Notes: generated from the letters alone by a model not told the origin. DNA of 64,000 nt from Guillardia theta CCMP2712 (GCF_000315625.1 NW_005434657.1:939430-1003429), one strand, 5' to 3'. Shown: positions 8,307-64,000, numbered from the stretch's first letter. A program made the numbers and translations.

Positions 8307-8309
8307 TCC

Positions 8310-8510: not shown

Positions 8511-8512
8511 AG

Positions 8513-27876: not shown

Positions 27877-27953
27877 AGGGTTTAGGGTTTAGTAGCCGGT
27901 AGGGCTTCGACAGGTTCCCCCATGGGGTTTAGGGTTTAGGGTTTAGGGTTTAG
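27877..27953 (+). repeat. Interstitial (TTTAGGG)n split by a 31-bp insert
   Basis: Repeats at 27877-27892 and 27924-27953. Confidence 0.95.
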
Positions 27954-28450
27954 AGCGCCGGTTATTTCAGGCAGCGCCGGTTATTTCAGGCAGAGCGCCG
28001 GTTATTTCAGGCAGCGCCGGTTATTTCAGGCAGCGCCGGTTATTTCAGGCAGCGCCGGTTATTTCAGGCAGCGCCGGTTATTTCAGGCAGCGCCGGTTAT
28101 TTCAGGCAGCGCCGGTTATTTCAGGCAGCGCCGGTTATTTCAGGCAGCGCCGGTTATTTCAGGCAGCGCCGGTTATTTCAGGCAGCGCCGGTTATTTCAG
28201 GCAGCGCCGGTTATTTCAGGCGAGCGCCGGTTATTTCAGGCAGCGCCGGTTATTTCAGGCAGAGCGCCGGTTATTTCAGGCAGCGCCGGTTATTTCAGGC
28301 GAGCGCCGGTTATTTCAGGCAGCGCCGGTTATTTCAGGCAGAGCGCCGGTTATTTCAGGCAGCGCCGGTTATTTCAGGCAGCGCCGGTTATTTCAGGCAG
28401 AGCGCCGGTTATTTCAGGCATTATTTCAGGCAGCGCCGGTTATTTCAGGC
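27954..28450 (+). repeat. 19-bp minisatellite (about 26 copies)
   Basis: AGCGCCGGTTATTTCAGGC unit with occasional 1-2 nt additions. Confidence 0.97.
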
Positions 28451-30651
28451 ACCATGGCTGCACGCGTGGTGTAGGGGAAGCTGCCAGGGCGCCAAGGAAG
28501 CTGCAAGCGAGAGGTTTGTATACTTCAAATAGCTTTCTAAGTATGGTTCTTCAGTATGATGAAAATGTTCGCAACCTGCTGTATCGGAGATCATGCCAAT
28601 ACACGCAGAGCGGACTTGTGGATGCCTCTGTCCTCGAAGCTGATCTCGTCGAGAGGGTGAAGAGCTTCGCGAAGCGTTATCCGAACATATCGCAGAAGCC
28701 ATCCGCTCGACATGTCAGCAGGCACGACGTGAGCTTCTCCAAGAAGCGATGACTGGATGGAGTGACGCATCCAGAGAGTGGTTTATGCAGCAGATTGAAG
28801 AAGCCAAGAAGGAGAAGGTCGAGACATACACCGCCTCAGCAGGCAACGAGGTGACTTCCTTCATCTCCATGACTCTCCTGGGCATCTCGTCGGTGTCAAC
28901 CATGAAGAAAAGCTGAAGAAGAAATTTGAAGAGATCGGACTGATCGTAGACTCAGTGCAAGAGAGTAAAGCAATCATGTGGAAGGCTCCGTATAGACCCG
29001 AGATAGCGAGTGCTGAGGAGATCCCGGTGACTGTTTCCTTCCTCCGCAATGCACAAGCGGAGAAGCTCTGGCAGGGAAGAGAGGACTTCGCGATTGATGG
29101 TCGCAAGTTCACAGCTGTACATGTGAGCATCGTGCACGATCGATCTTTCAAGATTCGAGCCAAGAGAGGACCCTGGGGCAAAGGGGGCAGCTTGGCAGAG
29201 CTGACTCACCTGCTAACCTTGGGCGGCATGACAACGGCTGAGATAGCTGCCGTCTATCGCTATCAGCTGCTGCGCCAGTCCCTTGCAGCGGTCCAACTCC
29301 AGCCGCTGGCAGGCATGCTGGTCGCTGGGGCGCCAGGCCAGCAAGTCCACAAAGGCTTAGGTCAGAAAGGCTTCATCGCTGTAGGGGCCAACGTCATCTG
29401 GAGACAGAGGGAGGTGGAGTGGATCGTCTCCTCGAGCTGCCCAGAGGCGAATGATACAGCATTTCGAGCTTTCCGAGAGAGCGAAGCGATGGAGGGAGTA
29501 CACCTGACTCTGTTCAGCGAGGACCCGAAGATCAGAGAGGCGCTCGCAGTCGAGTTGACAGCTGATCGCTTTGTGTCCAGAAATAAGGTGAAGAAGGCAT
29601 CAAGGATGCAGTCAAGTCGACGGCGGCATCTGGTCGCTTCACGAGGAAGGAGATGGAGGGGCTGTGCAACGGCGGCAACACGTCTATCGCAAGAGTCAAG
29701 AGAGTCCTGTTGGAGATCGCTAACAGGCTCGAGATCAACGTTGAAGGCATCGACATGGAGGAGGATTTGAACACCAAGTCCTGGAACGGGTCCAAGCTAT
29801 GCATCCTCCTCGGCTCCACGGAGGATGCTCGACGCATGCATCCTCCTCGGCTCCACGGAGGATGCTCGACGCGTGATGAAGGAGCTGCCCTTCTATCTCG
29901 AAGGCGCAGCAACCAAGCTCGAAGCAGTCGGCTTCGACAAGGAGCCTGACTCTGAGGCGGCTGGTCAGCGGGGCACCAGCGACGCAGCGCAGCGACAGGA
30001 GGAGAGCGAGGGAGAGTGGCTGGAGTTTACAGACCTGGAGAGGATCACAATGGAGGCAGCATCTCCGTCAAGCCAAGAGGACATGCAGCTCGTCAGCGAG
30101 CTGTCAGCAGTCATCGAAGATGCAGCTTCTTTGAACGAGGCGGGGACGAGCGAGCCGATCAAGCTGGTCCTGGACAAGGCCGTTGGCAACCTCCACGACA
30201 CCTTCTACTCTCCGGGGAGCCTGGAGTTCATGTCGCTGGGAGAGTGGGCGAAGATGCCAGAGGAGCAGGGAGTTGGGCGCAACGTTCTCAAGGAGAAGCT
30301 GGGGAAGTGGCTGCAGAGCAAGCGCTGGACTCGCGTGCAAGGAGAGAGCAAGAAGGCAAGGAGGGGCAGCGCGTTCTCGCCACGGGCAACGGCAGCTGCT
30401 GAGCTTGAGCAGGAGGCGGAGAGCGACGACATAGAGCGTCGATCTCTTAGCTTCCTGTTCATAGCACTGAGTAAATTCGCAGAGATGCATGTGCTGGCCT
30501 GCTCGCTGAAGGTGGACAAGAAGGACCGACTGCGAGTGGAGATGAGGGGAGATGACGAAGAAGAGGAAGACATGGAGGAAGAGCAAGGCGAGGGCGAGGA
30601 AGAAGACGGGGCGAGCCCGTACCGAGCTTGAGCTGAGCTCAAGGTAAGTAG

Positions 30652-30869
30652 AGAAGGTGGAGGCGACCGAAAGCCAAGGTGAGGAGAGGCAACTCTCCTG
30701 ACTGAAGCTGAGGAAGCTGAATGGAGGAGGAGTAGGTGGCGACCGAAGGCCAAGGTGAGGAGAGGCAACTCTTCTGACTGAGGCTGAGGAAGCTGAATGG
30801 AGGTAGAGTAGGTGGTGACCGAAGGCCAAGGTGAGGAGAGGCAACTCTCCTGACTGAGGCTGAGGAAGC
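30652..30869 (+). repeat. 76-bp 3' UTR tandem repeat (about 3 copies) with a GCAA tetraloop hairpin
   Basis: AGGAGAG-GCAA-CTCTCCT hairpin (one G-U pair in the second unit); also present at about 57870-58039. Confidence 0.9.
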
Positions 30870-31044
30870 CAAGAGAAGACAGCAGAAGTAGAGAGTAGAA
30901 AGACGCCTCAGAAGCAGGGTTCGCATTGTAGGCCGTGTACTCCAGGTGCTCGAGCGCCTCTTTAGACTAGGATCAAATTGCATAAGCCCACAACGAGGCC
31001 GAGCAACATTCTAGCATTCTAATAAACTCACATAATAATAATAA

Positions 31045-31328
31045 TAGGGTTTAGGGTTTAGGGTTTAGGGTTTAGGGTTTAGGACCGGGCCCCTGACAGA
31101 GGCACCGGGCCCCTGACAGAGGCACCGGGCCCCTGACAGAGGCACCGGGCCCCTGACAGAGGCACCGGGCCCCTGACAGAGGCACCGGGCCCCTGACAGA
31201 GGCACCGGGCCCCTGACAGAGGCACCGGGCCCCTGACAGAGGCACCGGGCCCCTGACAGAGGCACAGGGCCCCTGACAGAGGCACCGGGCCCCTGACAGG
31301 GGTTTAGGGTTTAGGGTTTAGGGTTTAG
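31045..31328 (+). repeat. 20-bp minisatellite (about 11 copies, 31083-31298) between two TTTAGGG arrays
   Basis: ACCGGGCCCCTGACAGAGGC unit; telomeric repeats at 31045-31082 and 31298-31328. Confidence 0.97.
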
Positions 31329-32702
31329 TAGACAACATCGCACATGTAGACATCATCGCACATGGTACTCATCGCACACACGATGAAAGAAATGCGAGAA
31401 TTGGTAGCAGTGGTGGATTCCTTCTGCAAATGGTCAGGACTGCAAATCAACAATAAGAAATCAGAGATAACCAGCTTCGACTATGCTCGCAAGGGAGAGG
31501 TTCCTGGTGCGAACAAAATAACGGTCATGGGGGAACCTGTCGAAGCCCTACCGGCTACTAAACCGTTCAAATATCTCGGCTATCGCATCTCTCTGTGGAA
31601 GGAAGAAAGACGAGCACCACGCTACGGATGTTTGAGGGAGACGACAGGAATGGAGGAAGCATACACCTCGGACTGATGTCGGAAGATGAAAAAATCCTCA
31701 AATGGTTCACTACTCAGGTTAGTGCAATCACCAGGGTAACGAGACAGCATCCAATTAGGTTGGACTTCTTGCCCGACGCGCTAGGAGCAGTACCACGAAG
31801 AGTGACCTATGAGGTACTGGTCAAGAGTAAAGCACAGAAGGGAAGGTTCACCAGAGAGGAAGCTGAACAGATCTGCGACGGGGAGGATCTCTCTATGGGC
31901 ATGACAATTCGAGGACTGAGACGGATCGTGGCGAGCTGGAAGGAGTCAGCGGCTGAGCACATCGTCAAGATCTCCTCGAAAGAAGATGTCGAGACCAACA
32001 GCTGGAACGGTGAACATCTAGTGCTCAGCTTCTCAGAAAAAGAAACGGCGATTGACATCCTCAGGTCCTTTGCGCCATGGGACAGGGCAGGGAAACTTCT
32101 TCTCCTAGAGCCAGGCAGTGCCAACATCTGGGAAGCGATCGCTACAGAACCCCCTACAGAGCCTCTTTGGGCTCAGGTAGATCTCGAACGGATCGAGAAT
32201 GAGATCAACATCCCAGAACCAGAGGCAAACGTGGTCCTCGAAGACATCTACAAAGTTCTAGAGGAGACTGTCAACCAGGGACAGAGTGCAGAAAACCAAG
32301 CTTGCAAACTCAGGCTCGATGGAGCCATCGTCGGCCTGTACGACAGCTTGTCATCTCCTGGAAATGCATGTTTTCCGACGCTGAAGGAATGGGCGGAATC
32401 ATCCTCGGCAACCCAGGACGACGACATGCAAGTTTTGAAGAGTAAGATTGCAAGAGTAAGCGAGCAGCATGCGTGGGAGACGGTAGCATCAAGAAGACGC
32501 CAGGGAGCCTTTGCAAAAGCAACAGGGAGAGGAGGGGAGAAACAACAAAAAGAATTTCGAACTGACCTGTTGTTTCTTGCCCTGAATAAAGTAGTTTCCA
32601 CAGCTACGCTAACCTACCAAGGCAGCGTTGGCTCGGGAGACGAAATTGAGTTTCTCTTGAGCAAGGCAGGATAGGGACTTCGGGTAGTACGTTACACCAG
32701 GC
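31329..32702 (+). mobile_element. Chimeric telomeric element: RT fragment joined to a diverged homolog of the RT-less element ORF
   Basis: 31360-31613 equals 60903-61156 (one mismatch seen); 31614-32674 shares HLxLxSEDxKI, KSxAxxGRFTR, TxSWNG, DLERI, KLxLDxAxxxLxDxxxSPG and LFxALxK with copies A and B. Confidence 0.88.
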
Positions 32703-32802
32703 NNNNNNNNNNNNNNNNNNNNNNNNNNNNNNNNNNNNNNNNNNNNNNNNNNNNNNNNNNNNNNNNNNNNNNNNNNNNNNNNNNNNNNNNNNNNNNNNNN
32801 NN
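32703..32802. other. Assembly gap (100 N)
   Basis: Run of N. Confidence 1.
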
Positions 32803-34018
32803 TTCTTCTGATACAGCAAGGAGAGGACGAACGACGTCTGGCACGAGCAATGGGGAGAAAAACGCGCTCCCCCTGACGAGCACAACCGTAAGAGAAGAGG
32901 AGGAGCAGGAGCAGGAGGAGCAGGAGGAGGAGGAGGAGGAGGAGGAGACTGCCAGTGGTCAAGAGAACGTAGTGGAAGACAAGGAGAAGGGAGAATGTGA
33001 GGATGGAGAAAGTGGGAGGGAGAAGAGTTGAGGGAAGGAAAAAGTGAATGAGGAGGGGGGTGAAGGGTGCAGGGGAGGATGGTAGTGTGAGATTGCCGCA
33101 GCAAATGGAAGATTCTCAAGCTGCTGGGCTGAGAAGGAAGGAACCAACGGGTATGTAGCTCGTCTCTCCTCTTCTCTCCTCCTCCTCTTTCCCTCCTCCT
33201 TACAAGCCCCCTGCTATCACATCCGTTCAATCTTCCATCCCACTGCCCTTCCTCTCCCTCCCCCCTTCTACTCCCTCCCCGCTCCCCACTCCACTCCTCA
33301 CTCCCATCATAAATGCAGACTTCCTTTGCTGCGTCTGCTCGTGATTTCTTTACTGACTCGCGGCAAGGTACGGCGAGCGATGGCACGACCAGTGGAGTGA
33401 AAACTACGAGGACAACGGCTCTGGGTGAGGGAGAGCACGGGAAGGAGAGGAGGGGAGGGGAGGGGAGGGGAGGGGAGAGAGCACGCCGGGATGACTGGAG
33501 GGCACGAGGGGAGAGGAAGAGAAGTGTGCAAGTAGACTGAACAGGAGCAAGGAATGATGTCATGATGGACAGGACAGGAGAGAGGTTGGAGGAGGGAGAG
33601 ATATGAGAGATGAAGACAGCGGAATCTTGAACTTGTGACAGAACCGCAGGAACAAAGTTTGCAACAAGTGGAAAGTTTTCGGTGACGGGACGGAAAGGAT
33701 CGAGAGGTCAGGGGAGGAGTGGGACGGTAAGCAAATTAATTAATTCGATTATCGTGAAACATGTGACTGTGTCAACTACAGGAAGAGGTTGGTTCCAGAA
33801 GGGAGGAGAGACTCTCCTCAACGGCGCCAAGGTAACGCTTAGGAGCCCTGGAGGAGGGGAGGAGGAAGCAAGGAGGGACTGGAAGACCTCTGAACCTCCA
33901 TTGACAGGTTGACGGCTGGCACGAGCGTGCATGGTAGAAGAATCAGCAGCACATGCCCAACCAAAATATAAGGAGAAGGAGGAGAGGAGAAGGAATAGAG
34001 AAGGATTGGGCCTCATTA

Positions 34019-36878
34019 TTAAATGTGAACGAAGCTGTCTGGATGATAAACCTGAAGAGAACTCGTCACCTTCTCCCTCTCTCCCTCCTTCCTTCCCTTC
34101 CCCTCACCTGCAAGCTTGCAACAAGAATGTAGATGACCCACAACAAGAAAAGGAAGCAGCTGGTAACCTGAGAGACGAGGTGAGGAGATCGAAAGTGGCA
34201 ACAGACGAGGAAAGGAAGGAAAGGAAGGCCTTGAGGATAAGCGGTAGGCAGGCAGGACATCGTGAGGGAGGGGAGGGCAGACAAGCAGGGAGCAGAGGCG
34301 AAGGAGGGGCAGAGAGCTTACAATATTGTTGACAAGCGATCCGCCGATCTCAGCTCCGAAGGCAAACCTCTTGCCGAAGATGACAACGAACGAGGCGATG
34401 CTGAGGATGGCGAAGATAAGAACATTGAAGCCCAGGGACCCGGCCTCCACCACAAACGCTCCCGTCTTCTCATACTGTTGGAACCTGCTCCATTTCTGGT
34501 ACTTCAACCTCCACTGGTCGTCCGGTCCAGTCACCGCCCACTTGACAGCAGCGCACAGCCAGGGGATGCCGAGACCGAGAAAGACGTTGACGCAGTTGCT
34601 TCCCGTCACGTTCCCCAGCGCGTTGTCGGCCGTGTCGTCCATCTTGATCGCGATCATGGAAGCGAAGGTGTCAGGCAACGAAGTGCCGAGGGCAACGATG
34701 GTGATGGCAGTGACAGGCTTCTCCAGCCCCACAAGGCAGCCGAAGATGGAAGCGAGGTCTCCTACCATGGCAGTGACGCAGCCAATCAGGCCGAGGGCAA
34801 CGAAGAAGCAGTACCATCCTCCTCCGAGGTTAGGGGGGGGGATAAAGGCAGCCACAAACTGCCAGGGGCAAGTGAGGATGAAAATGCAGATTTCGTTGAC
34901 GGACGCCTTGGACCAGTCTCCATCCTCGTTGACTTGGAAAGCCTGGGGTGCAAACAGTCAGCATGAGAGGAGAAAGTGTGCGAAAGTGATGAGTGGAAGA
35001 CAACAAGGAGAAAGAAATGAGTATTTTGAGAGGAGCTTGGAAGGAGTACAATAATCAAAGAACTCACTCGCACAAACTGATCTTTCCATGAGATTGGCTC
35101 ATCCTCAATGTCGCCTGCTGTCTCGTCCAAGGCCTGATTGCCATTCGGCTTGGGGGATCCGGGGGATCCATTCACCTCTGCCACTCCGTTGCCAGCTGCT
35201 ACTTGGCCATCTCCATGTGCTTCGTTCTCAGCCCCTTGCGTTGAACGTTCATGAATCTTCTGCAGAGCCTTCCTGTTCTCGAAGGTGTTGTTGATGAAAG
35301 CTCTTCGGTACGTCAGGTAAGATGCCTTCTGATTCTTCGCCAGCGCAAGACGAACCACATCGATGAACCTGTTGGCTCCATCCTTGCCCACCAGGTGAGC
35401 GTGGATCGCAGCTTTCTTCCAGTGCTCGCTCGTCTTGTCGTTGTGCGCCAACGCCTGAAGGAACTTGTTGCTTCCTGGGCTCATTTCGAACTTCTTGCCT
35501 GCATTTAACGGGGCGTCGTTGCTGACCGTCACTACCTTGTCCTCGTCCATCCGAGTGACTTCATCAGATGCAGGTTGGGTTTCATCTCGCTTCTCCTCCT
35601 CGGGTGAGACTTTGCTCGCTGTGTGAGTGTCTGCGATGTACACGGCAATCAGAAGGACGACCATGATACCAAGCGTTGCCGCTGCTTCCCAGACTTCTAC
35701 GACATCAGGTGAAGAAACAATCAGGATGATGAGCAACCAGATATCTGCGTGAGGATGTTACAAGCAAACCAACAGATCCATCCCGACAGCTTACATGCCA
35801 AAACAGAAAACACACTGGTGATGCAGAATCCAACAAACCCTGTGATCTTTCTCTTCACACCAGCACCAAGCACCATGCTGCACAGAGCAGTGATCACAAA
35901 CAAGTTGTATGCTGCCGAGCCGATGATGGTGCCTGGCCCGAGGTCATCGGCATAGAAGTTGGCTCCAAAGGTCTCGATGATGGCAAGAAGCAGCTCAGGC
36001 GTCGAGCTTCCCAAGGCCATGAGCGTCAGGTTTGCCACTGCCGGGTTCCAGATGAGAGCATCTACTTCTTCGTAGATGAACTCTCCGTCGGCTCCTTTGA
36101 CGGGCTTCCCGTCCTCGCCCTTCTTCTTCACCCTCTTCTTGTAAGTGCTGTTTGTGATGGTCTCGATGCCCGCCATGAACACGTCGCTGAGGATCGCGAT
36201 GCCTACAAACGCCCACAGCAGGCCAACAATGTATAGAAAGGCACGGAAACCAGTGTTCCACGACCCTTCGCCGCTGAAGATGGGAAAGATCAACCCCTCT
36301 GTGCAATTGCTCGAGTTGGTGTCAGCGGCAAGAATGGGTTGAGGAAGCGCAAGGAAGGCGAGACACATCAGCATCATCAATCCCGTACTCGTTCCCAATC
36401 GATTCCTTGCCAGACAACATGCCCTTGCTGGATAATTGACAGATGCTGCGCCTGTAGAGCAAGAAGCCCCAATGTTCTGGGAAGGGTACATCTCCAATAG
36501 CTGATTGCAAGTATGCGAGGGCTCTGACGGGCCTCGACCAGTAGTGCTTAAACCTTTGACTCGACAAGGAGCTTCGCAGCTGTCCTTGCCCAAACAACAC
36601 CGAGGAACGCTGAAATCATAGTTTACTCTATCCTCCTCCACGTATTCATGGTTAGATGGCTGATCAATCGATACATCGTAGTGCAAAGAGTTAGCTGAAG
36701 CATGTATCTCATCGGTGCCCTGAGAGTGATCAAAAACATCCTGGTTCTGCCCTGTCAAGCTTTGTTTCGCAGTTCTTCTCATGTTTGTCCCGGGCTCTTC
36801 TTTCAATGTATTTGTCGGGATCTTACTCTTGCTCTCTGCTCCACTACTTCTCTTCCTCCTGCACTCCGCTTCCTCCAT
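34019..36878 (-). CDS. Na+/Ca2+ exchanger (NCX/CaCA family), multi-exon; start uncertain
   Basis: Alpha-1 repeat ANLTLMALGSSTPE..GTIIGSAAYN and alpha-2 repeat VALGTSLPDTFAS..GNVTGSNCVNVFLGLG. Confidence 0.92.
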
Positions 36879-45154: not shown

Positions 45155-45191
<37 letters not shown>

Positions 45192-47940: not shown

Positions 47941-49716
47941 ATGACTGATTCAACTCCGATCGACAGCAACCTGCAGTACCTGCGAACCCCGATAGTCCAG
48001 GCCATGGGTACCATGTCTGTTTGTTGCTTCTGTCAGGCTGACTGCACTAGATTGGGTCGGATTCATCGCTCTCAGTGGCACTGCGGCAACACTTGCTTAC
48101 CGTTTGTTCACTTTCGTTCCTCCGAACTCGGATGTCCTCTACTTCTTCGGTTCGTCCTTGACTGGCAAAATGCAAGCCCTTATTGTTCAGACAGGTTACA
48201 GAGAGCATGGAATGATTTCTCTCTATGTCAATCTCTTTGCAGGGGTTGCATATGTAAGTGAAGAAGGATGTTATTTTGCTTTTGACTTGTTGCTCCTCCC
48301 AGTATGCCAAAGTCTGCTCGCATCTTTCGGGCGATGTCAATGGTGAATTCAACATTGTCGCGTACAAATACTTTGACTATCTCATCACCTGTCCTCTATT
48401 GGTCTGCGAGTTGCTTGTGCTGCACTATGTGATGTCTGAAGATGTCTGAACAGACCTTCGATCTATTGAGCACATTGAACCTTCCTTACAAGATCACGTA
48501 TGCCATTTATGTGCTCGTCACCTTGTTCAGCGGCTTCATGGCTGCCAACTCGCCCAAGCCCGGAAGGTTCTTAGGAACGGAAAAGAGCTCGAATGACGTG
48601 AGTTTGCAGATACTTGTGGTTCGGCTTTGGCATGATCATCTTCTCATATACTTGGTTCAACATCATCTGCCTGGTGCAGGTGAGGCGAGCTCGCTAACGG
48701 GAGGACGAGCGAGTAAGGCTGCTGGCAGGTTCGATTCATCCAATACTTCAAGAAGAAAGTTTCGAACAACTCGAACACGAGCAAGAGAATGTCTATGGCC
48801 TCAAAAGCTGGTGTGCTGCTTGACCCGCATATCTCCTGCCTACCTCATGTTCTCCGCAGGATTTCGGAACAAGAACGTGAGGAATCCGCTGCAGACGGCT
48901 CTCTCCACCTACTTCTGCATCTGGATGGCCTATCCCATCTTGTGGATCCTCCTGGAGACCAACGCAATCTCTAGGGTGACCGAGCACTGTATTAACGTCG
49001 TCATGGACGTCCTTGCTAAATCCATATGTTCGAATTCTTGCACATGAAGTTGTTTGTGGTGACGAGCTTCCAGATGGGTTTGCTCTGCTCAGGTTTCAGC
49101 TGATCATGGACAAAGCACGGTTCGAGATGACGGAGCTTAAGGTCACTAAGGAAGATTTGCTCGAAGACTACAAGAATGAGAAGCAGCGAATGCGGGTGAG
49201 AATGTCATACACATTAAGGTATGCTCGCTAACTCTACGACAGGAGCTGCGTCGAAGAGCTCAGGCAGCACAGGACGGACAAGAGTCGTTCAGCGAAGACG
49301 AGGAGGAAGAGATGAGTAGACACAACAAGGAAGCTGATCGTCCTTCCAAGACAGAGGCCTCTTCAGCACCGACTCTCCCCATGTCTCAAATGCAACTTCA
49401 GGCGTTGATGCAGCAATTCTCTAACTTGCAAGCATCGTCGCCAGATCAGCAGCCGGTGACCCCAAACTTCCTCTCGGCACAGCCGTTCCCTCAAGCTCAG
49501 CCGTTCCCTCAAGCTCAGCCGTTCCCTCAAGCTCAGCCTGGCTTCCTTCAACAGGCTCAGAATCTGATGCCGAGACTTTCAGAATCGTCCGACAGTCCCA
49601 ACAACTCGTCACCTCTTCAGAGGCCTCATCCTCTCCCTCCCGCTGCTCCTCCCGCAAACGGTTCCAGGTTGCCTGGACAAGACTGGCGCTCGTCCATCAT
49701 GTTCACGCCTGAGTGA
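47941..49716 (+). CDS. Bacteriorhodopsin-like cation channelrhodopsin (cryptophyte CCR/BCCR family), multi-exon
   Basis: DWVGFI, GYRE..ISLYVNLFA, YKYFDYLITCPLL-TFDLL (DTD motif), LNLPYKITY, YFCIWMAYP, MDVLAKS (retinal-binding Lys), GFALLRFQL; Q/P-rich tail. Confidence 0.92.
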
Positions 49717-51611: not shown

Positions 51612-51718
51612 TTGCCCGAAGAGTCAGCCGTTTTCCACTCCGTTACGGTTTCAGGCAGCACCAAGCCTCACAGCTAGCAGACAAATAAGGGAGCAATGCA
51701 GACATCGCCGTCCAATGC

Positions 51719-53158: not shown

Positions 53159-53222
53159 AATCTCGAAATAAAGACAACGGATAAGACAACTGACGAGGAA
53201 AATTAATGATCTTCGGGAGTCC

Positions 53223-53372
53223 GGGTTTAGGGTCGTCGGGTTTAGGATTTTAAAGGTCGGGTTGAGAATGTAGGGTTTAGGGTACTTACAGGGTCGTCGC
53301 ACGGATTAGCGTAGTACGGTCGAGTGAAAGTTAGGGTCGTCGGGCTTAGGGTCGAGTCGAGTCGGGTTTTGG
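53223..53372 (+). repeat. Degenerate telomere-like repeats
   Basis: GGGTTTAGGG interspersed with TCGTC/GTCGG; a related 15-bp unit GTCGGGTTTAGGGGA occurs at about 55384-55436. Confidence 0.7.
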
Positions 53373-55596
53373 GGACTCATGCCGTTCACAAACCCATATG
53401 CAGCCCCTAGCAAATCTGGTCTTTTTTTTTCTACTTTTTTGGGGGTTCACATGGGGTCCGTATATACACTCCCTGTTGACTACCCCCTGTTTTCATCGAT
53501 TAAAGGGGGGGTAGAGAGACTGGACAAAAGCGGGGTGGGGTGATTTGAATTTCTCTGGCGTGGAACCCTTCCCCCGCCTCAGTGGTTTTAGAGGTACTGC
53601 AATTTATTGGTACAAAAGAGAGGTTTCCTGGTACAGAAGTTCCCCCCTCCACCACCCTACCCCCTTCGTATCGGTAGTATCTCCTCACAGAGGATATTTG
53701 AATCCACAGAGAAATCCCTCAATGCTCACTGTTATGAATACTCACTGTTATGCGCATCCTCTAGTCATTTATGTCGCATGACGTTTCTTCCTCAACAGCA
53801 TCCCGTCACTGTGCGCTAGAGGAACGGGCTTCCTGCAGTCTCCTCTCCATCAGGAGATTCTGTTCCTGGAGCCGCCCCGGGTGTTCGGCCTCTGCATACT
53901 AGAGCGGACAAGTACGTGCAAGCTGGAAAACGCTATCAGGGATGCGACTAGGCTGGCACCAAGAGCTGAGGAGGCTAGTCGTCCTCTTCTACGCTGGCCA
54001 TGGGATGAAGGCAGGAAGGGCCAAGAGGACTACACTGTGACTCTCAGTCTGTTTCCTTGTTGTCATCGATGCCTGCAGATACCGGGAGGGTCTGCAGGAG
54101 ACGGGACGGCTGCTCCCGCAGCAGGCGGCGAAAGACGCCCTGCCTCGAAAAGAGACTGCTGCAGTCTTTCTATTTGCACAGCATGATGTTGTCAGGGCAT
54201 GTGGGTACATTTCTACGAGAAATATGGCATTCAACTAGCCTGACTATTGAACATGTCGTGCATCGAGCACCGACATCAACTTCAGGGAAGAGACCGTACT
54301 CTGAGATGCATATCTGTGTGGGATATGCACTGTCCATGCGGTAGTCATGGACCTTCACGCAATCATCCGCGGCAGATGACAAGAAGAAATTCAACAATTC
54401 GGTTCGAGCACACTTCACTCAGTTGTTGTGGCAGCTCCTTCAAAGTAAATTAATGTCTGAGTAAAGTCGCGTTCAATCTGGATGCCTCCAAATCTCTGTG
54501 TGAAACGTGCACAATCGTACCATTCTTTCGCTAATTTCGTTTGAAGGTGACTGTCAGTGCGCCCTCGAAATATAACGAACCTGATCCACTGCTGCGCCTG
54601 TTGGTTCTAACATGTAGGGTTCATCCTTGAAAGGCACAGGAACTTGATTCTCTGTTCTGTAAGAGTGATGTACTGATGGTCCAACTGCACTGACCTTTTC
54701 ATCCGGGGTTTCAAGAAGGGCTTCCCACGTTTGCGAAACCGTGGCAGTTAACCATACTACCGTAGTCCTAATGCCTTGTGCAGATCGATGTTGAGACGGA
54801 AGAAATTAGTTTGTTTTCTAGTGTTAAAGAAGTTGACATTCTTCCTTTCCAATTTCGGATGATTCCACTTCGAAATTTCACCATGACATGGTACCAGATT
54901 GAATGACATGTCTAAACCTTCAACGTGGTGTAGTAATTCAAAGTGCACAGAATGATCGAAGGCATTTGCTGCCGTTGAAGGAACAACGGTGCCTCTTTGA
55001 TGTATCTCATGCGAATGACTCTGAGAGGATCACCTTGTTCTCTTGCTCCAATCTCCGAGGCTCCTCCTTTTGGCAATGCCGAGCGATGAGGCAGCCCTTG
55101 ACGACGGTGGCCGCCCCGATTGCGCCGCTATTCAACGGTCCGTCAAGGCAAGGAGGATTGCAACTGGTACTGAAAGTAGTACCATAGGGTATGTGTCGGT
55201 ACCGTACTGTAACTACCGTTAAAACAACTTGTAAAGAGGATTGTTGAAATAAACTAAAACTCTTGGGTACTATGAAGTGGGGTCTCTAACTCGTTTATCA
55301 AAAAAGCACGCCTACTAAAAAAAAAGACCCTACCGAAAAATTTAAGTGCCAAATTAACGAAAGGCCTGAAAGTGAACGGCATGGTCGGGTTTAAGGGAGT
55401 CGGGTTTAGGGGAGTCGGGTTTAGGGGAGTCGGGTTCCGAGAGTCGTAAGTTGAGTTCAAAAAGTTTCGTGATGTAACCCTGTTCAACGGTTTCTGGGAA
55501 TCACTTCGGATCAACCAAGAATACGAATTTGCCTTAGAGACTACACTAGGATATGATTGGGGACAGTTTTAATGGACCCCCGCTTCGCTAGGAGGC

Positions 55597-55655
55597 TTTA
55601 GGGTTTAAGGGTTTAGGGTTTAAGGGTTTAGGGTTTAAGGGTTTAGGGTTTAGGG
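55597..55655 (+). repeat. Telomeric array mixing TTTAGGG and TTTAAGGG
   Basis: Direct reading. Confidence 0.95.
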
Positions 55656-58039
55656 CGCCGTTATTTTCGGCTGCGCCGTTATTTTCGGCAGCATGGCTCC
55701 TTGCCAGGTGTAGGGGAAGCCGCCAGGGCGCCAAGGAAGCTGCAAGCGAGAGGTTTGTATACTTCAAATAGCTTTCTAAGTATGGTTCTTCAGTATGATG
55801 AAAATGTTCGCAACCTGCTGTATCGGAGATCATGCCAATACACGCAGAGCGGACTTGTGGATGCCTCTGTCCTCGAAGCTGATCTCGTCGAGAGGGTGAA
55901 GAGCTTCGCGAAGCGTTATCCGAACAGCAGGACAGCCCAGGCTTGCAAGGCTGTGGCCCGGGGATGCACCCCCGACGCTATCGCAGAAGCCATCCGCTCG
56001 ACATGTCAGCAGGCACGACGTGAGCTTCTGCAAGAAGCGATGACTGGATGGAGTGACGCATCCAGAGAGTGGTTTATGCAGCAGATTGAAGAAGCCAAGA
56101 AGGAGAAGGTCGAGACATACACCGCCTCAGCAGGCAACGAGGTGACTTCCTTCATCTCCATGACTCTCCTGGGCATCTCCTCGGTGTATGTCAACCATGA
56201 AGAAAAGCTGAAGAAGAAATTTGAAGAGATCGGACTGATCGTAGACTCAGTGCAAGAGAGTAAAGCAATCATGTGGAAGGCTCCGTATAGACCCGAGATA
56301 GCGAGTGCTGAGGAGATCCCGGTGACTGTTTCCTTCCAAGCGGAGAAGCTCTGGCAGGGAAGAGAGGACTTCGCGATCGATGGTCGCAAGTTCACAGCTG
56401 TACATGTGAGCATCGTGCACGATCGATCTTTCAAGATTCGAGCCAAGAGAGCCTCCGACCCTGGGGCAAAGGGGGCAGCTTGGCAGAGCTGACTCACCTG
56501 CTAACCTTGGGCGGCATGACAACGGCTGAGATAGCTGCCGTCTATCGCTATCAGCTGCTGCGCCAGTCCCTTGCAGCGGTCCAACTCCAGCCGCTGGCAG
56601 GCATGCTGGTCGCTGGGGCGCCAGGACAGCAAGTCCACAAAGGCTTAGGTCAGAAAGGCTTCATCGCTGTAGGGGCCAACGTCATCTGGAGACAGAGGGA
56701 GGTGGAGTGGATCGTCTCCTCGAGCTGCCCAGAGGCGAATGATACAGCATTTCGAGCTTTCCGAGAGAGCGAAGCGATGGAGGGAGTACACCTGACTCTG
56801 TTCAGCGAGGACCCGAAGATCAGAGAGGCGCTCGCAGTCGAGTTGACAGCTGATCGCTTTGTGTCCAGAAATAAGTTGAAGAAGGCATCAAGGATGCAGA
56901 AGAAGGCAGGCGGCAAGGACGGCAAGGAGATCAAGATCATCATCAAGTCGACGGCGGCATCTGGTCGCTTCACGAGGAAGGAGATGGAGGGGCTGTGCAA
57001 CGGCGGCAACACGTCTATCGCAAGAGTCAAGAGAGTCTTGTTGGAGATCGCTAACAGGCTCGAGATCAACGTTGAAGGCACCGACATGGAGGAGGATTTG
57101 AACACCAAGTCCTGGAACGGGTCCAAGCTATGCATCCTCCTCGGCTCCACGGAGGATGCTCGACGCATGATGAAGGAGCTGCCCTTCTATCTCGAAGGCG
57201 CAGCAACCAAGCTCGAAGCAGTCGGCTTCGACAAGGAGCCTGACTCTGAGGCGGCTGGTCAGCGGGGCACCAGCGACGCAGCGCAGCGACAGGAGGAGAG
57301 CGAGGGAGAGTGGCTGGAGTTTACAGACCTGGAGAGGATCACAATGGAGGCAGCATCTCCGTCAAGCCAAGAGGACATGCAGTTCGTCAGCGAGCTGTCA
57401 GCAGTCATCGAAGATGCAGCTTCTTTGAACGAGGCGGGGACGAGCGAGCCGATCAAGCTGGTCCTGGACAAGGCCGTTGGCAACCTCCACGACACCTTCT
57501 ACTCTCCGGGGAGCCTGGAGTTCATGTCGCTGGGAGAGTGGGCGAAGATGCCAGAGGAGCAGGGAGTTGGGCGCAACGTTCTCAAGGAGAAGCTGGGGAA
57601 GTGGCTGCAGAGCAAGCGCTGGACTCGCGTGCAAGGAGAGCGACGGCATAGAGCGTCGATCTCTTAGCCTCCTGTTCATAGCACTGAGTAAATTCGCAGA
57701 GATGCATGTGCTGGCCTGCTCGCTGAAGGTGGACAAGAAGGACCGACTGCGAGTGGAGATGAGGGAAGATGACGAAGAAGAGGAAGACATGGAGGAAGAG
57801 CAAGGCGAGGGCGAGGAAGAAGACGGGGCGAGCCCGTACCGAGCTTGAGCTGAGCCCAAGGTAAGGAGAGAAGGTAGGAGGCGACCGAAGGCCAAGGTGA
57901 GGAGAGGCAACTCTCCTGACTAAGGCTGAGGAAGCTGAATGGAGGACGAGTAGGTGGCGACCGAAGGCCAAGGTGAGGAGAGGCAACTCTCCTGACTGAG
58001 GCTGAGGAAGCTGAATGGAGGTAGAGTAGGTGGTGACCG
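55655..58039 (+). mobile_element. RT-less telomere-inserted retroelement, copy B (3'-truncated)
   Basis: Near-identical to copy A; starts with two 18-bp units GCGCCGTTATTTTCGGC(T/A); ORF pieces 55701-57848; ends inside the 76-bp repeats directly on TTTAGGG. Confidence 0.88.
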
Positions 58040-58088
58040 TTTAGGGTTTAGGGTTTAGGGTTTAGGGTTTAGGGTTTAGGGGTTTAGG
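58040..58088 (+). repeat. Interstitial (TTTAGGG)n
   Basis: About 7 units. Confidence 0.97.
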
Positions 58089-61000
58089 AGAATGCACAAT
58101 CAGGAGAGAAAACCTCCCAGAGAGGGAAGGAGCGGAGGGGGGAAAGGCAGGAGGAGCAAAGGGGCAATGATTGGGCGCAGATGCATCGAAAAAGTTCAGA
58201 CCCAGGTTTCCTCATCTCACAAAATGTGAATGGTTGCAATCACTTTGTTCTCAAGCACATCCTCGCATACTTAATCCAGTCCTTCCAACCTGGGGTTGTG
58301 CTACTACAAGAGGTAAGGGTCTCGGCCCGCGACGAGAACAAATTAAGGAAGATGATCAAGGAGAACTGGGCCTGCTACAGAATCTTCCTGGGGCCTGCAA
58401 AGATCAATGCGAAGAAGGGGAAAGGAGACCTGAGGTTGGTAACGCTGGTACATGCGGCCCTGTCGCCGTCACCCTCCCCTGCCGCTCACCAGGCGTGCAA
58501 CAAAGAAAAGAAATATCGAAACCGAGTGTTTTCGATCAAAGTCGGAACAGGGAAAAACTCTTTCTTAGTCACAAACCTCCATCAGGTACCTGCGGAAAAT
58601 GCGATTCGAGAGCAAGGGGAACTGTGGGCAGAGCTGCTACACCTCGCTCTGGGAACGAGAGAGACACACATCATAGCCGGAGACTTTAATGCAGCAAGAA
58701 CCAACACAACAACACCAATGCGGAGAGGATATTCCCCCTCATCTATCACCGCAAAAGCAGATGAGAGATTCGAGAAATTCCTGGCAGACCTTTCCGCACA
58801 CCGTACACTCTCATATGAACAGATCAGCGAGACTGGGACAACATTTACCTTCTCAACATGGTACAAACAAGAACTGATAGAAGCCAAACTCGACGCAGTT
58901 CTCGCTATTCACCCCCCAAGTGACGAGGACAACTTTCCAAACATCTCCCTTCAATCGTGGACGGTCGACGGCTGTGTGATAGGGGGAGCAGTTGATCACA
59001 GAGCCCTGGTGGTGCAAGTACACACCAAGTTCACGTCCGAGGAGACGCAGCTAATCCCACGAGTAGAAGTGCATCAGATGAAGTCACGACAGAAGAAGGG
59101 GGAAACCCCTAAAAGCAGATGGGTGCTGGATCGCGATTCGTGGGAGGAGAAGAAGATCGAATGGGCGCAACAACTAGATGCAAACATACGAGACATGCGA
59201 GCTAAGGCGCAAGAATGTAACATTTGTGAGATGCTCGCCAACTCTCTACCACTAAAGGAGGTGAAAATCAGAAAGGGAGGGAGGCGACATTCGAACAAAG
59301 AACAAATGGATTTGAAGAGATCGATCCGCAACTTGCGGACTAAACTTAGGGAAGCATCACAGCAAAGCCCAGCGACTGGAGTACCTACGGAAGCTACATT
59401 ACAAAGAGAATTGCGAACTAAGATCGAGAGGTTCAGAACGATATGTGAAGAACAAAACAACGAAGTTTTCCAAGAGATCTGCCAACAGCAGCAAACACGG
59501 CTAGGCACGGTAGGCAGCCGTGAATCCCAGAATGCAATGGGACGCAAGAATGATTTCATTCCCAAAGAACCGATGATAAGTCAAGACATCAAGAAAAAAC
59601 ACCCCAACTCCCTTCGTTGCCACAAAGGCTTGGCTCTTCGACTGCTCGGCAAGATAGTCGACAATGCCGACGAGCTCATCAACCAAATCGAAGCAACCCT
59701 ATCTAGCGAAGACACGAGGGGCGTTAGAGCATTTTGGAGTGCAAACCAGCAACTGATGATTGGGATCGAGCGAGAGGGGACAGATGACTGGATCTTTCTA
59801 TCACTGCTACCTGCAAACACAATCACGAAAGCAATTGTAGCACTAGAAGAATCGGATAAAACAACATGGGAGATAGCAGGATACCGTGATCTCACGGATC
59901 ATCTCCCAATGCAGAAGGTTAGAGAGCTAGAGGACGCGGACCATACACGATTCTTCTTCAGCGTCAACGCATGCACGAAACAAGGGACCTGCTCAAAATG
60001 CTCAAACATCGGATGTATGCTCCCCTTGGCTGACTCAAGCGACGAGACCATCGGAGGGGGAGGGATTACCCCGTACTGCACAAAATGTAAGTCGTTCACA
60101 ACCGTGGCCCCAAGACGGATCACACCGCCTGAGGGGGTGCAGCTTTCAAGGAGACAACAACAGGAAATCACCAGACCCCTGGCACCGGGAGAGATTGATG
60201 TCTGGCTCGCCTCGGCGCCGAGACGAAAGGCTGCAGGACTTGACCTCATTTCGAACGAAGTGCTGCGGGCGCTGCCACCAGCATGCCGAGAGGAAGTTGG
60301 CAAGTTAGTCAATGCAGCCCTAGAAGGCAAAGCTGAGGTTCTCAACAAGACAGCGAGAGTACGCCTCCTGCCAAAAAATCAATTCTGTCACATTCTCGAA
60401 AACATGCGGCCAATATGCGTCATGTCAACGCTTACTCGACTAGTTCAGGCAATCCTGGCGCATCGTCTGAGTAAGACAGTAGAAGCAAATAACGTCCTCA
60501 CAAACTTCCAGGAGGGGTTCCGTCCAGGCAGAAGCACAAGTCGGCAGGCTCATCGACTGATCTCGATCGTAGAAGAAGCAGAAGAGGCCAAAACGTCCCT
60601 CATTCTCTTGTACCTGGACTTTGCGAACTTCTTTAACAATGTGGCGATCGAGGTGGTCGAGCAGGCAATGAACAGCCTAGGCTTCCATCCTGAAGACATT
60701 AGAACTGTGATAGCCTGCAACAGTGGAGTCGAACTGCAAATACAAACAAACGAGTTCAACACAGGGAAAATACCTCTAATAATCGGGCTGCCACAAGGTG
60801 GAGCAAGTAGCCCACAACTGGCCAACTTGGTGCTATGCATCCTCTCTAGGCAATTGGACAAGTGCAGCACAGGAACAACAAACAACCTGTCCTTCGCCGA
60901 TGACATGGTACTCATCGCACACACGATGAAAGAAATGCGAGAGTTGGTAGCAGTGGTGGATTCCTTCTGCAAATGGTCAGGACTGCAAATCAACAATAAG

Positions 61001-64000
61001 AAATCAGAGATAACCAGCTTCGACTATGCTCGCAAGGGAGAGGTTCCTGGTGCGAACAAAATAACGGTCATGGGGGAACCTGTCGAAGCCCTACCGGCTA
61101 CTAAACCGTTCAAATATCTCGGCTATCGCATCTCTCTGTGGAAGGAAGAAAGACGAAGAATAAAGGGCTGCCCTTTCACTTGGGGAGAACGAGCATACGT
61201 CTTTGAAAAAACCAAAGAACTGATCAACAATATCAGCTCGTCGAGTTATACTCCTGCGCAAAAATTTTACCTGGTGAAAGTTGGAATTCTCAACGTCTTT
61301 CGCTACTCCGCAGTCATGACTGGATGGACTTGGCGAGACCTACAAGAATTAGATCAACTGTGGATACGAGCTTTTAAAAAAGCGTTAGGCCTAAGCAAAA
61401 GTACAGGGAATGGTATATTCTACCTGCCAACAGAGAATGGAGGGCTGCAGGTCCCTCATCCTGCCCCAATCCTAGGGAGAGCAGCGTTACGATACATCGA
61501 ACGAGAAGTGAATAGTAAGCATGGTGGAGACATCCAAGATAGACTGATATCTAAACTCAGAAACTCGTGCGTAAAATGGGGGTGTCAAACAATGCTTGAG
61601 CTCCAAAGAGAAATGAATTTTCGAACTATGGAGCGGGATGTGGTGCGGGGACCCGAAGCTTTAGCAGTCTGGCTGGCGGAAAAACTAAACACGAGGATCA
61701 GCTGGGCCCATATAGAAGCAGGTCACCTACCTGGAAGCATCTCCCTCCTTCATAGGATGGAGGATATGGTGGCAAACTTGAACGACTGTAACAGACCACA
61801 GGGCTGGACGAACTTCCAAGCCTTATGGAGGCAACTCCCGAAACTCCAATTCTCCTTGCTACGCAATGTACGACCTATCGCGGACGAAGAACTGCATTTG
61901 CCAAGGAAGCTCTGGCCTTTCCCAAGGCAACGCGAGGAGGCGGAGGGGATCGTAATGCAATTGCTACAAGAAAATGTCATCTGGGTAAGCAGCGTCAACA
62001 GAGCATCAGGAACAAAGAGGAAAAGACGAGAGGCTGTCACACAGGATAGTGCTACAACCCGAAAACGAAAGTCACACCCGCAATCAGAGGAGGACCGGGA
62101 GGAGACATCCAAAAAGCATCGGGAAGCAGCAGAAGAGAGAAGGCCACACCCAGCTCATGCAAACACAAGATCCCTCATGGCTAAATTACTAGGCAATCTG
62201 GATCAACAGGAACACCTTATCCTAAAAGGTAAGGAAAGTTTCAAAATCAAGGGCGACATAGCAATCATGGACCGGCCCAGAAGTCACACGGGCCAAGAAC
62301 AAGACATCAAAGAAGCCGAACCTTCCCTTCGCTCGGCGCCATTTGCGAGGAAAGAAGATGAAGATGGCGCCAAGAACCCAGAGAAGACAGAGATCCTACT
62401 GCAAATTGCTAAGCATATCAGCAAAAAACACAACAGCTTACTCAACTCGCAAGCTTGGTGGGAACATCTAACCACCGCCATGGCTGAAATTCGAGATAGA
62501 CAACAAGGCCTTCCGCTGTCGTACGAATTTCTAGAACACTTGGGGATGCTCGCTGAAACAAAACAGTTCAGCAACTGGCCCACCCTCTATCACCCGACAA
62601 TCCAGGCCGCAACAGACAGCTTGCAGGACGACGAGGTTCGACGTGAAATAATATGGATCGACCAACAGGAGCAATACCTCAGCCACGCCGCATGCGAGTC
62701 CGGAACAATCATGATCGGATGGAACCAAACTTGCTTCAGGAAAGAAATCCCTGACGGCTTCATGCTAGTCGGTAAGGTACCTAAAGGATCAGAAATATGT
62801 TACGCTGCAAATTTCTGGAGGACGGGCGATCGGAGCCTCAGGAAGTCACAAGACGACCTGATTGTCTACTGCAAAGAGTCGGAACAAGAGAGAATAATTG
62901 TCCAACTCACAGTACACCTGATCCCTGAACGGGAGGAGCTACAAGAATACCGAAGGAAGCAAAACGAAAACTATCAAGCCTCGGCCAAACAGGAGAAGAA
63001 CAGGAACCACGTGTGGTCCGCAATCCACGGCGACATATCACGAAACAGGAAGGGTCGATCAATGTCGATAGGATACAGCACGCAGGAAAAGGAAGGAGAG
63101 CAGGAACGCGGAGCGATCAAGATACACGGAAAATGTAGCGTCATCAGAGCACATACCATCGCACTCTGCATACTCCTACAAGCGATTTGGGAACAAAGAG
63201 GCAAACAGAAAACAATCAGGAAAATCTTCGTCCTCTTTAAATCAACCCGAATGCATCGCTTTCTTACGGACACCCTCAGATGGTCTACCATGCAGTATGA
63301 AGACGAGCTCGTATACGACTTGGCAGGAAGACTGCAGGAATGCCTGAGCAAATTTCAGCGGGAAGGCATTGAGATCAACCTCTCTCTGATCGCAGACCAC
63401 ACCGTAGTGCAAGAAGCTGCAGAGGAAGCTCGCAAGGGAAAATCCTCCTTCTCCTCCACGTGGGAAAGGGCCCTCATCGACAGCGACTTGGGATTCTGCA
63501 TTGCAGACGAAGAGAACTTCAAGCCGGGGATGGATCGACTGAAAATATGGGATAAGATAATCAGAGAAGAACAACTGGAACTGAGGAGGAAAGAAGCCCC
63601 CCTTACCTTGACGGAAACCTTTCTCCTGGAACCACAAGTGGGCAGAAGGATCCTAGGTCGAGCCTTACAGAGGTGTCGAGGATCAGTACTTCGGACAGCC
63701 ATCCAAGCTATTACCTGGTCAGCACCTACGAGGAAAAAGCTGTTCCAGTGGAAGAAGACGACATCCCCCTGTTGCCCATGGTGCGAAGGCAGGGAAGAAA
63801 GCTGGGTGCATATCCAGCTAGCCTGCAAAGAATTTGAGCTCATGATCGCTTTGGCACACAACAGAGTAATGGAGACAATCAAGGGATGCCTGACAGAAAG
63901 CTGGAAGAAGAAAAGTGTTGAACAGGAGAGTTGGTGGCAAACGCCAATCAACTCTATGACAGGGCTAGGACTGAGCTATAAAAAAGACGATCTGAGTAAT
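58089..64000 (+). mobile_element. 5'-truncated non-LTR retrotransposon with a long open ORF (APE, Zn ribbon, RT, degenerate RNase H, CCHC); runs off the window
   Basis: Frame of ATG 58181, absent from the ORF track, consistent with no stop before the window end: SQNVNG, LLQE, AGDFN, KLDAV, VDHR; KAAGLD, NMRPI, QEGFRPGRST, LDFANFFN, GLPQG, FADD, FKYLG; CPWC..ESWVHIQLAC..AHN. Confidence 0.93.

Follow-up and report, generated by a model that had tools for sequence, protein, structure and literature searches.

Chromosome ends of the cryptophyte alga Guillardia theta carry a two-component system of retrotransposons that is specific for the telomere repeat TTTAGGG and whose members lie with their sense strand on the G-strand. 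The system was recognized in a 64-kb stretch of DNA from strain CCMP2712 (G000:C17:939430-1003429, hereafter the window), which is the final 64 kb of the 1.0-Mb contig C17 in an assembly of 87.1 Mb and 669 contigs. It comprises at least two autonomous families of long interspersed nuclear elements (LINEs) that encode a reverse transcriptase (RT), LINE-A and LINE-B, and two families, F2 and Fam3, that carry only a homologue of the first open reading frame (ORF1) of these LINEs. I consider it highly probable that the four families constitute a telomere-repeat-specific non-long-terminal-repeat retrotransposon system, in which the ORF1-only partners are most likely copied in trans.

The RT-coding element is represented by a complete LINE-A copy of 10,809 bp (C15:1035717-1046525). 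It opens with a block of 20-nt repeats (unit AGGCCGCTGGAGTAACAGAC) and encodes a 701-aa ORF1, one in-frame UAA and a 2503-aa ORF2; both ORFs are open in at least three genomic copies. The domain set of ORF2 consists of a Ulp1-like cysteine protease, an apurinic/apyrimidinic-type endonuclease (APE), the RT, and a C-terminal CCHC finger with a restriction-like endonuclease (RLE). Pfam places the APE (Exo_endo_phos, 33.6-34.6 bits, cut-off 24.5) N-terminal to the RT (RVT_1, 121 bits), and the APE motifs N, E, D-x-N and D-H are found in the ORF2 translation. The protease match is weak in LINE-A (Peptidase_C48, 12.9 bits, cut-off 20.7); its H...D...NCG motifs are nevertheless there, and in the LINE-B relatives, which are 48% identical, the same domain scores above this threshold (26.5 and 37.6 bits). 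For the C-terminal 224 aa, an AlphaFold2 model was built from an alignment of 45 sequences in which the C-C-H-C, PD, R, K and Y columns are invariant. The model (predicted local distance difference test score, pLDDT, 92.8) has R2 proteins as its top seven Foldseek matches (E 2.5e-8 to 1.5e-5, TMq 0.60-0.74, 201-222 columns), followed by PD-(D/E)xK cap-snatching nucleases. A single-sequence AlphaFold model of the C-terminus was unusable (pLDDT 41), and a sequence-only PDB search with a 3-sequence profile returned no match for the domain. From the 45-sequence model, the domain is predicted to be a CCHC finger plus an R2-type RLE. More distant proteins with the same C-terminal domain carry Peptidase_C48, APE, RT and RNase H.

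Both the APE and the RLE of these LINEs keep their conserved residues, and both are retained in all open copies. Compared with solved proteins, the LINE-A RT matches R2 proteins best (E 6e-23) and L1 ORF2p next (1e-15). This combination of APE, RLE and protease points to a Dualen-type architecture, an assignment made from domain architecture and from the RT scores, R2 above L1 ORF2p. A previous sequence-only reading of the window had described the family that starts at 58089 as encoding APE and RT. Exo_endo_phos and RVT_1 are indeed found there, but the copy is 5'-truncated and the family is not a plain APE-RT one. As for the expression of ORF2, the two LINE-A ORFs lie in the same frame with a single UAA between them and the first AUG four codons on (L033:2612-2656), and in the LINE-B relatives they lie in different frames and overlap in UAAUG (L092:2223-2283), an arrangement that suggests termination-reinitiation or read-through.

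LINE-B is represented by two 10.7-kb metagenome contigs of the Joint Genome Institute (JGI), with an ORF1 and an ORF2 of 2573-2575 aa that is 47-48% identical to LINE-A over residues 1150-2503, from the RT to the C-terminus. Both contigs end ...TCTAATAAACTCAAA(TAA)nT|AGGGTTT (the bar marks the junction with the telomere repeat), and in one of them an F2-like 3' end with a telomere tract stands before the element. In G. theta, LINE-B is found at contig ends, with 86-88% nucleotide identity to the JGI contigs and a (TAA)n tail.

The RT-less partner F2 is 2,946 bp long in an intact copy (C15:1032754-1035699) and consists of 19-nt 5' repeats, the number of which varies from 2 to 26 between copies, a 715-aa ORF, 76-nt repeats in the 3' untranslated region (3'UTR) and a (TAA)n tail. 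The product of the ORF is 29% identical to LINE-A ORF1 over its full length (682 aa, BLASTP E 4e-84); F2 is therefore an ORF1-only element and not an element with an unrelated ORF. The 715-aa ORF is intact in five of the six full copies outside the window; of four copies read in addition to the C15 one, three have the full 715-aa ORF (711-714 identical residues) and one has 688 aa. The description of F2 in the sequence-only reading, an ORF of about 700 aa and a repetitive 3'UTR, thus fits the family; the ORFs of both window copies are, by contrast, broken. Fam3 is a second ORF1-only family, of 2,855 bp between telomere tracts and with a (TAC)n tail; like F2, it is too short between these tracts to hold an RT. 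The two are mutually nearest (55% identical), and each is 28-32% identical to the ORF1 of LINE-A or LINE-B, which are 37-38% identical to each other; an ORF1 alignment of four elements has a mean column identity of 61%. The ratio of nonsynonymous to synonymous substitution (dN/dS) between F2 and Fam3 is 0.39 over 287 codons. Given this ratio and the divergence of F2 and Fam3 from the LINE ORF1s, the ORF1-only state is old and the ORF constrained. A recent internal deletion of a LINE was considered as the origin of F2 and is ruled out by the 29% full-length identity and by the grouping of F2 with Fam3 and not with the LINEs. One database match to ORF1, at 94% identity, is the hypothetical protein GUITHDRAFT_111706 of Guillardia theta CCMP2712, and the only ORF1 relatives recovered by a profile search were copies from Guillardia itself. 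Separately, at least six distinct 19-24-nt 5' repeat units follow telomere tracts at L053, L059, L061, L065, L072 and on contigs C89 and C329, among them AGGATCCCTTTATCTGAGGC, GGCAGGTTCCTTATTTCCT, CCGGGGATGGATCGACTGAA and AGGGGTGTTAGAGCATTTTGGAGG; there are therefore more families than the four characterised.

The two components also share their 3' ends. The 3'UTRs of LINE-A and F2 are unalignable except for TTTAGACTAG and, about 40 nt on, a 17-nt box, TCTAGCATTCTAATAAA, both of which stand at matching distances from the 3' end in the two elements. Seven 3' ends were folded singly: those of LINE-A, F2, Fam3, a fourth family, two LINE-B relatives and the F2-like element of a metagenome contig. 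All have in common a closing stem, UUAGA(C) / (G/U)UCUAA, round a variable hairpin just before UAAUAAA, with fold z-scores of -1.25 to -3.78. The 3' end of LINE-A RNA runs from this stem (UUAGA...UCUAA) with its hairpin through UAAUAAA and a short spacer to the (UAC)n tail. The shared stem is a reasonable candidate for the element recognized by the RT. Comparison of the 3' tails thus bears out the pairing of RT-less element and LINE proposed from the window, since stem, 17-nt box and a trinucleotide tail are common to F2 and LINE.

Insertion sites were then read genome-wide. The F2 3' junction is (TAA)nT|AGGGTTT, with n = 3-12, in 27 of 27 complete 3' ends (from 25 contig ends), and that of LINE-A is (TAC)nT|AGGG. 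Full-length 5' ends are mostly TTTAGG|AGG..., where AGG is common to the telomere unit and the 5' repeat of the element, and copies truncated at the 5' side meet the telomere repeats at many different internal positions. Each telomere tract is oriented like the element beside it. Among F2 matches of at least 1 kb, 41 of 42 face outward and lie within 33 kb of a contig end: all 22 on the plus strand are within 33 kb of the right end, and 19 of the 20 on the minus strand within 17 kb of the left end. LINE-A and LINE-B are distributed like F2, and the families together mark at least 55 contig ends. Contig C203 opens with about 270 bp of terminal telomere, inward of which stands a LINE 3' end; element 3' ends therefore face the chromosome tip. 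The sense-on-G-strand polarity that the sequence-only reading had drawn from a few copies, and the 3' junction that it had seen intact in one, hold across the genome. This orientation excludes end-priming from the G-strand overhang, which had been entertained as a candidate, and means that priming has to start from a C-strand 3'-OH, at CCCTA^AA or immediately before it. Some copies are truncated at the 3' side and run straight into TTTAGGG (window copy B, C15:1032679 and the repeat array at window 31084-31299). These do not stem from target-primed reverse transcription and fit terminal erosion followed by healing by telomerase, for which the genome has a Telomerase_RBD match (51 bits).

F2 is transcribed. 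In the raw reads of an RNA-seq run of 2026, 4636 reads match F2, more than 99% of them in one direction, which is the sense direction since reads carry a poly(A) extension. Read depth is highest just upstream of the element 3' end; placement of reads omitted the final 70 nt as repeats, so that the RNA 3' end lies outside the coverage. Within the F2 ORF, 31 reads have a poly(A) extension at L051:1125, just 3' of AGTAAA, which could reflect premature polyadenylation or internal priming.

An attractive scheme starts with a nick that an endonuclease of the element would make in the telomeric C-strand, at 5'-CCCTA^AA-3' or immediately before it; the freed 3'-OH, with 2 nt (TA) complementary to the tail, would then prime reverse transcription. 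A copy made in this way would be sense on the G-strand, with the 3' end nearer the tip, and its 5' end would be joined near TTTAGG^ through AGG microhomology with the 19-20-nt 5' repeats of the element. F2 and Fam3 RNAs would most likely serve as templates in trans for the ORF2 protein encoded by either LINE-A or LINE-B, because both families have kept an ORF1 homologue and the same 3' module and have no RT. Insertions would alternate with extension by telomerase, and terminal erosion into an element, followed by TTTAGGG healing, would generate the 3'-truncated copies. A bolder version, which I put forward only as a speculation, is that the telomeres of G. theta are hybrid, the joint product of telomerase and a guild of Dualen-type elements. 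F2 and Fam3 would then be HeT-A-like Gag specialists that target ribonucleoprotein particles to telomeres, the two endonucleases would have separate tasks, C-strand cutting for priming in one case and G-strand cutting for second-strand joining in the other, and the 19-20-nt 5' blocks would arise by reiterative copying during integration.

Several observations weigh against this scheme or parts of it. No insertion event was observed, and break-induced replication or unequal exchange may also enlarge the arrays, a case that has been made for the MoTeR elements of Magnaporthe (PMC7367193). The ORF1/F2 protein has no Pfam family, PDB profile match or ESM Atlas neighbour; without detectable relatives or fold assignment, any role given to ORF1 is a guess. 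The partner RT is ambiguous, as F2 agrees with LINE-A in the 17-nt box but with LINE-B in the last 20 nt and the (TAA)n tail. RNAalifold, run on a MAFFT alignment of the seven 3' ends in which the LINE-B ends were misaligned, gave no consensus structure, and the stem arms are near-invariant and hence lend no covariation support. As to the Dualen assignment, Pfam detects no RNase H in LINE-A or LINE-B, and BLASTP finds no similarity between LINE-A and the RNase H of a relative; a degenerate domain is possible. The terminal, outward rule has exceptions as well: on C72 elements stand head to head 17-31 kb from the end, C176 has plus orientation near the contig start, C14 has an internal 419-bp fragment, and the window itself contains an inner cluster and a relic near 8.2 kb. 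The draft assembly is old and has gaps within arrays. The C72 arrangement (G000:C72:427494-441983) comprises plus-strand LINE-B and LINE-A pieces followed by minus-strand F2 and LINE-A pieces, and may have arisen by fusion of chromosome ends, by inverted duplication or through misassembly.

Three other explanations were weighed. F2 and Fam3 might not be mobilized in trans but be dead subtelomeric passengers, multiplied with the LINE arrays only by recombination among chromosome ends (break-induced replication, unequal crossing-over or gene conversion). Array recombination of this kind is documented for MoTeRs in Magnaporthe (PMC7367193), copies are 98-99% identical and lie in tandem arrays with short telomere tracts between them, and the head-to-head arrangements and interstitial relics indicate that ends do rearrange. 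I nevertheless find this explanation unlikely, given that tail and telomere spacer lengths, 5' repeat counts and 5' truncation points, each joined to telomere repeats, differ between copies, that the F2 ORF is mostly intact, diverges from Fam3 under constraint and is transcribed in sense, and that recombination alone does not explain a conserved 3' module that F2 and Fam3 have in common with the RT-coding families. That insertion is independent of endonuclease and uses pre-existing telomeric 3'-OH ends (lagging-strand or damaged C-strand ends), with no sequence-specific nick, is quite improbable. Telomeric elements devoid of endonuclease do exist (Athena Penelope-like elements, PMC10088271) and the target here is always the telomere; priming from the G-overhang would, however, give a centromere-facing tail as in Drosophila (PMC10088271), which the orientation excludes, the 3' register is invariant, as fits a specific cut, and both endonuclease domains are conserved in all open copies. 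It is scarcely credible, finally, that F2 is an ordinary subtelomeric host gene family merely adjoining telomere-targeting LINEs, given the full-length homology of its protein to LINE ORF1, its intron-less unit with the fixed 3' junction, its LINE-like 3' box and trinucleotide tail, its telomere-flanked 5'-truncated copies and the telomere repeats that bound every copy on both sides. In favour of a host gene family are a long, intact and transcribed ORF without known domain and the fact that subtelomeric gene families are common.

Elements of this system resemble, and differ from, several known ones. A cysteine protease domain was reportedly part of the original description of Dualen elements, and LINE-A ORF2 shares with them an N-terminal APE, a C-terminal RLE and such a protease, together with an RT nearer to R2 than to L1 among solved proteins. 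Dualen (RandI) was first described in Chlamydomonas reinhardtii by Kojima and Fujiwara in 2005, as cited in PMC9977147 and PMC4640811. The presence of APE and RLE in one protein is unique to the Dualen clade (PMC9977147); an RNase H between RT and RLE, reported for Dualen/RandI, is accessory and not defining (PMC4640811), and none is detectable in LINE-A. Whereas Chlamydomonas Dualens occupy dispersed sites with long target duplications (PMC9977147), the G. theta elements lie in the telomere repeat only, in one register, and have a separate ORF1 and ORF1-only partners. Genomes of cryptophytes are reported to contain Dualen-class repeats, with an expansion in every cryptophyte analysed but G. 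theta (PMC12747079).

SART1 and TRAS1 of Bombyx mori, which belong to the R1 clade, likewise insert sequence-specifically into telomerase-made repeats, coexist with these repeats and leave 5'-truncated copies that persist within them. Sense on the G-strand is the polarity of SART1. To our knowledge, SART and TRAS have no Gag-only partner. They are APE-only R1-clade elements with poly(A) tails, unlike the G. theta elements with their two endonucleases, protease, (TAC)n or (TAA)n tails and 19-20-nt 5' repeat blocks. SART and TRAS insert in opposite orientations (PMC10088271).

The likeness to HeT-A, TART and TAHRE of Drosophila lies in a telomeric element that has Gag alone, homologous to the Gag of a telomeric partner with RT, in mixed head-to-tail arrays at chromosome ends, and in an RT-less lineage that is long-lived and still coding. 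The analogy with HeT-A and TART, which had been proposed on sight of the window, has become stronger in that the F2 ORF is a full-length homologue of LINE ORF1 and the 3' module is common; it fails in two respects, for the tails do not point towards the centromere (C203) and telomerase is not missing (Telomerase_RBD). The Drosophila elements extend the very end, replace telomerase and belong to the Jockey group; in G. theta the tail points outward, insertion takes place within TTTAGGG tracts, endonucleases and a telomerase gene are present, and the LINE is of Dualen type. The tail of the Drosophila I factor is said to have been found by Chambeyron et al. in 2002 to consist of UAA repeats instead of poly(A) and to give a precise start of reverse transcription; that element differs in being APE-only and not telomere-specific. 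Drosophila telomeric elements have their poly(A) tails towards the centromere (PMC10088271). MoTeR1 and MoTeR2 of Magnaporthe oryzae also pair an RLE-bearing RT element with an RT-less one, head to tail in telomere repeats, with short telomere tracts between copies, a common 3' terminal sequence, terminal truncation and then the addition of telomeres de novo, interstitial telomeres and rearrangements (PMC7367193). MoTeRs, however, have their 5' ends towards the tip and are CRE-like and without APE, and MoTeR2 has a unique part without obvious function and 860 bp of 5' sequence common to MoTeR1 (PMC7367193). The G. theta partner codes for a conserved homologue of ORF1 and has in common with the LINE only about 17-70 nt of 3' module, and the 3' end is tipward.

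A 2023 survey of telomeric elements covers SART/TRAS, GilM/GilT, Zepp, MoTeR1, Tx1-1_ACar, Athena and the HeT-A/TART/TAHRE elements; its LINEs fall in four clades, none of them Dualen and none from cryptophytes (PMC10088271). Full-text literature searches, with Repbase Reports and subscription journals outside their reach, returned no description of telomeric retrotransposons of Guillardia or cryptophytes. Telomere-targeting LINEs and RT-less partners as such are already known; what is new is a telomere-targeting Dualen-type LINE, with two endonucleases and a protease and with Gag-only partners, in a cryptophyte. The G. theta system is a parallel, of independent origin, to the telomere elements of Drosophila. 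Only a few lineages are known to have telomere-targeting retrotransposons, and G. theta adds a fifth, deep-branching LINE type to the four clades of that survey (PMC10088271). A Gag-only partner lineage, otherwise known essentially from Drosophila, is found here in an organism that keeps telomerase; were the hybrid-telomere speculation true, a Drosophila-like arrangement between elements and host would have originated independently in a telomerase-keeping protist. In this culturable alga, with many intact, transcribed copies, the role of each Dualen endonuclease becomes testable, as do the way in which the 3' RNA module and the trinucleotide tail set the start of reverse transcription and the reason why Gag-only elements arise at telomeres. 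The system is also relevant for the assembly and annotation of cryptophyte chromosome ends.

Within the window, elements are confined to two clusters in the range from 27877 to 64000, besides the relic near 8.2 kb. The sequence-only reading had taken this whole range as the system. Both clusters belong to it, but the intervening 22.6 kb does not, because it consists of single-copy cellular genes (32803 to about 55380: a Na/Ca exchanger, a protein kinase and an NmrA-like gene) and shows no element homology: no match to LINE-A or F2 is found in the DNA directly past the assembly gap. That every copy lies in or after a TTTAGGG array of the same orientation was seen correctly: the range has 11 three-unit TTTAGGG matches against 0 expected by chance, and all five arrays are on the plus strand. 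The features are as follows.

27925-27953, 31045-31083, 31300-31328, 55593-55655 and 58039-58088, plus strand: TTTAGGG arrays, from the repeat search
27877..27953, plus strand: proximal boundary of the inner cluster, made of a short TTTAGGG tract, an inverted LINE-A piece and TTTAGGG x4
27886-27924 (C17:967315-967353), minus strand: the inverted 39-nt piece, from its match to the LINE-A RT region
27954..31044, plus strand: F2 copy A, an ORF1-only element, from sequence reading and element comparison
27954-28451, plus strand: 19-nt 5' repeats of copy A, x26
28543, plus strand: start of the copy A ORF, which has four indels
30662-30869, plus strand: 76-nt 3'UTR repeats of copy A
30961, plus strand: 3' stem arm TTTAGACTAG of copy A
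31010-31026, plus strand: 17-nt box of copy A, with the tail (TAA)4T
31045..31083, plus strand: TTTAGGG x5.6 after copy A, beginning in the fixed register T|AGGGTTT
31084..31299, plus strand: 20-nt repeat x10.8, unit ACCGGGCCCCTGACAGAGGC, with telomere repeats on either side
31300..31328, plus strand: TTTAGGG x4, from the repeat search
31329..32669, plus strand: fragment C, a defunct chimera that joins part of a LINE RT region to part of a LINE ORF1, from comparison with LINE-A
31360-31613, plus strand: RT-region part of fragment C, LINE-A 6808-7061
31612-32669, plus strand: part of fragment C from the second half of ORF1, LINE-A 1646-2703
32703-32802: assembly gap (N); LINE homology ends at 32669, 33 nt earlier
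55384..55655, plus strand: transition from subtelomere to telomere, with 15-nt units containing GGGTTTAGGGGA (55384-55436) and then a degenerate telomere array
55593-55655, plus strand: the degenerate telomere array, with TTTAAGGG variants
55656..58039, plus strand: F2 copy B, with two 5' repeat units and an ORF start at 55782
58040..58088, plus strand: TTTAGGG x7 between copy B and the LINE-A copy
58089..64000, plus strand: LINE-A copy, 5'-truncated, equal to positions 3991-9879 of the 10,809-bp reference and running off the contig end
58217-58768, plus strand: Exo_endo_phos (APE) of the LINE-A copy (Pfam, as for the next)
60371-61132, plus strand: RVT_1, with FADD at 60887
63770 onward, plus strand: CCHC finger

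The junctions given in the sequence-only reading were recovered on reading copy A, copy B and the start at 58089. Copy A is bounded by GGGTTTAG|AGCGCC on the 5' side and AATAAACTCACA(TAA)4T|AGGGTTT on the 3' side; its ORF has lost 49, 4 and 43 bp in three deletions and carries a duplication of 37 bp. The 5' junction of copy B is TTTAGGG|CGCC, or TTTAGG|GCGCC if the ambiguous G is read otherwise. Its ORF has an insertion of 5 and a deletion of 77, and it is truncated within the 76-nt 3'UTR repeats, so that the final 230 bp are absent and telomere repeats abut directly. The LINE-A copy begins at 58089 after GGGGTTTAGG and stays open in one frame from 58091 up to the end of the window. It has lost about 4 kb at the 5' side (5' repeats, ORF1 and protease region), and its RLE core and 3'UTR fall past the contig end. 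Its 26 terminal nt (63975-64000) are unlike all other LINE-A copies, which stay in frame, probably on account of poor sequence at the contig end. The 20-nt repeat array at 31084-31299 would be the 5' repeat block of another family, its body lost and its end healed by telomere repeats; it is read as a 5' block by analogy with those of LINE-A, F2 and LINE-B.

Directly after the telomere tract, at the 5' truncation point of fragment C (31328-31364), the final 18 nt of the LINE piece are imperfectly repeated about 2.1 times. This stutter may illustrate how 5' blocks of 19-20-nt repeats originate, whether through template jumps or through reiterative copying as the element integrates. The inner cluster as a whole (27.9-32.7 kb) is either what is left, now interstitially, of an earlier chromosome end or the result of a scaffold misjoin. 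At 8090-8305, 56 kb from the contig end, a Fam3-like 3'UTR piece is followed by the F2 leader and the first ~40 nt of the F2 ORF (8207-8284); at 8284-8305, TTTAGGGTTTAGG stands head to head with CCTAAACCC, and unique sequence follows. The arrangement resembles a scar left by an old fusion between telomeres or by a fold-back. Among the ordinary genes of the window, an open frame at 48442-49044 has a weak Bac_rhodopsin match (23.8 bits, slightly below the cut-off). Outside the genome, two 10.4-kb short-read metagenome contigs (L094 and L095, ENA PRJEB17505) contain LINE-A with an ORF1 100% identical to that of the genome, and Guillardia DNA or RNA is therefore present in the PRJEB17505 samples.

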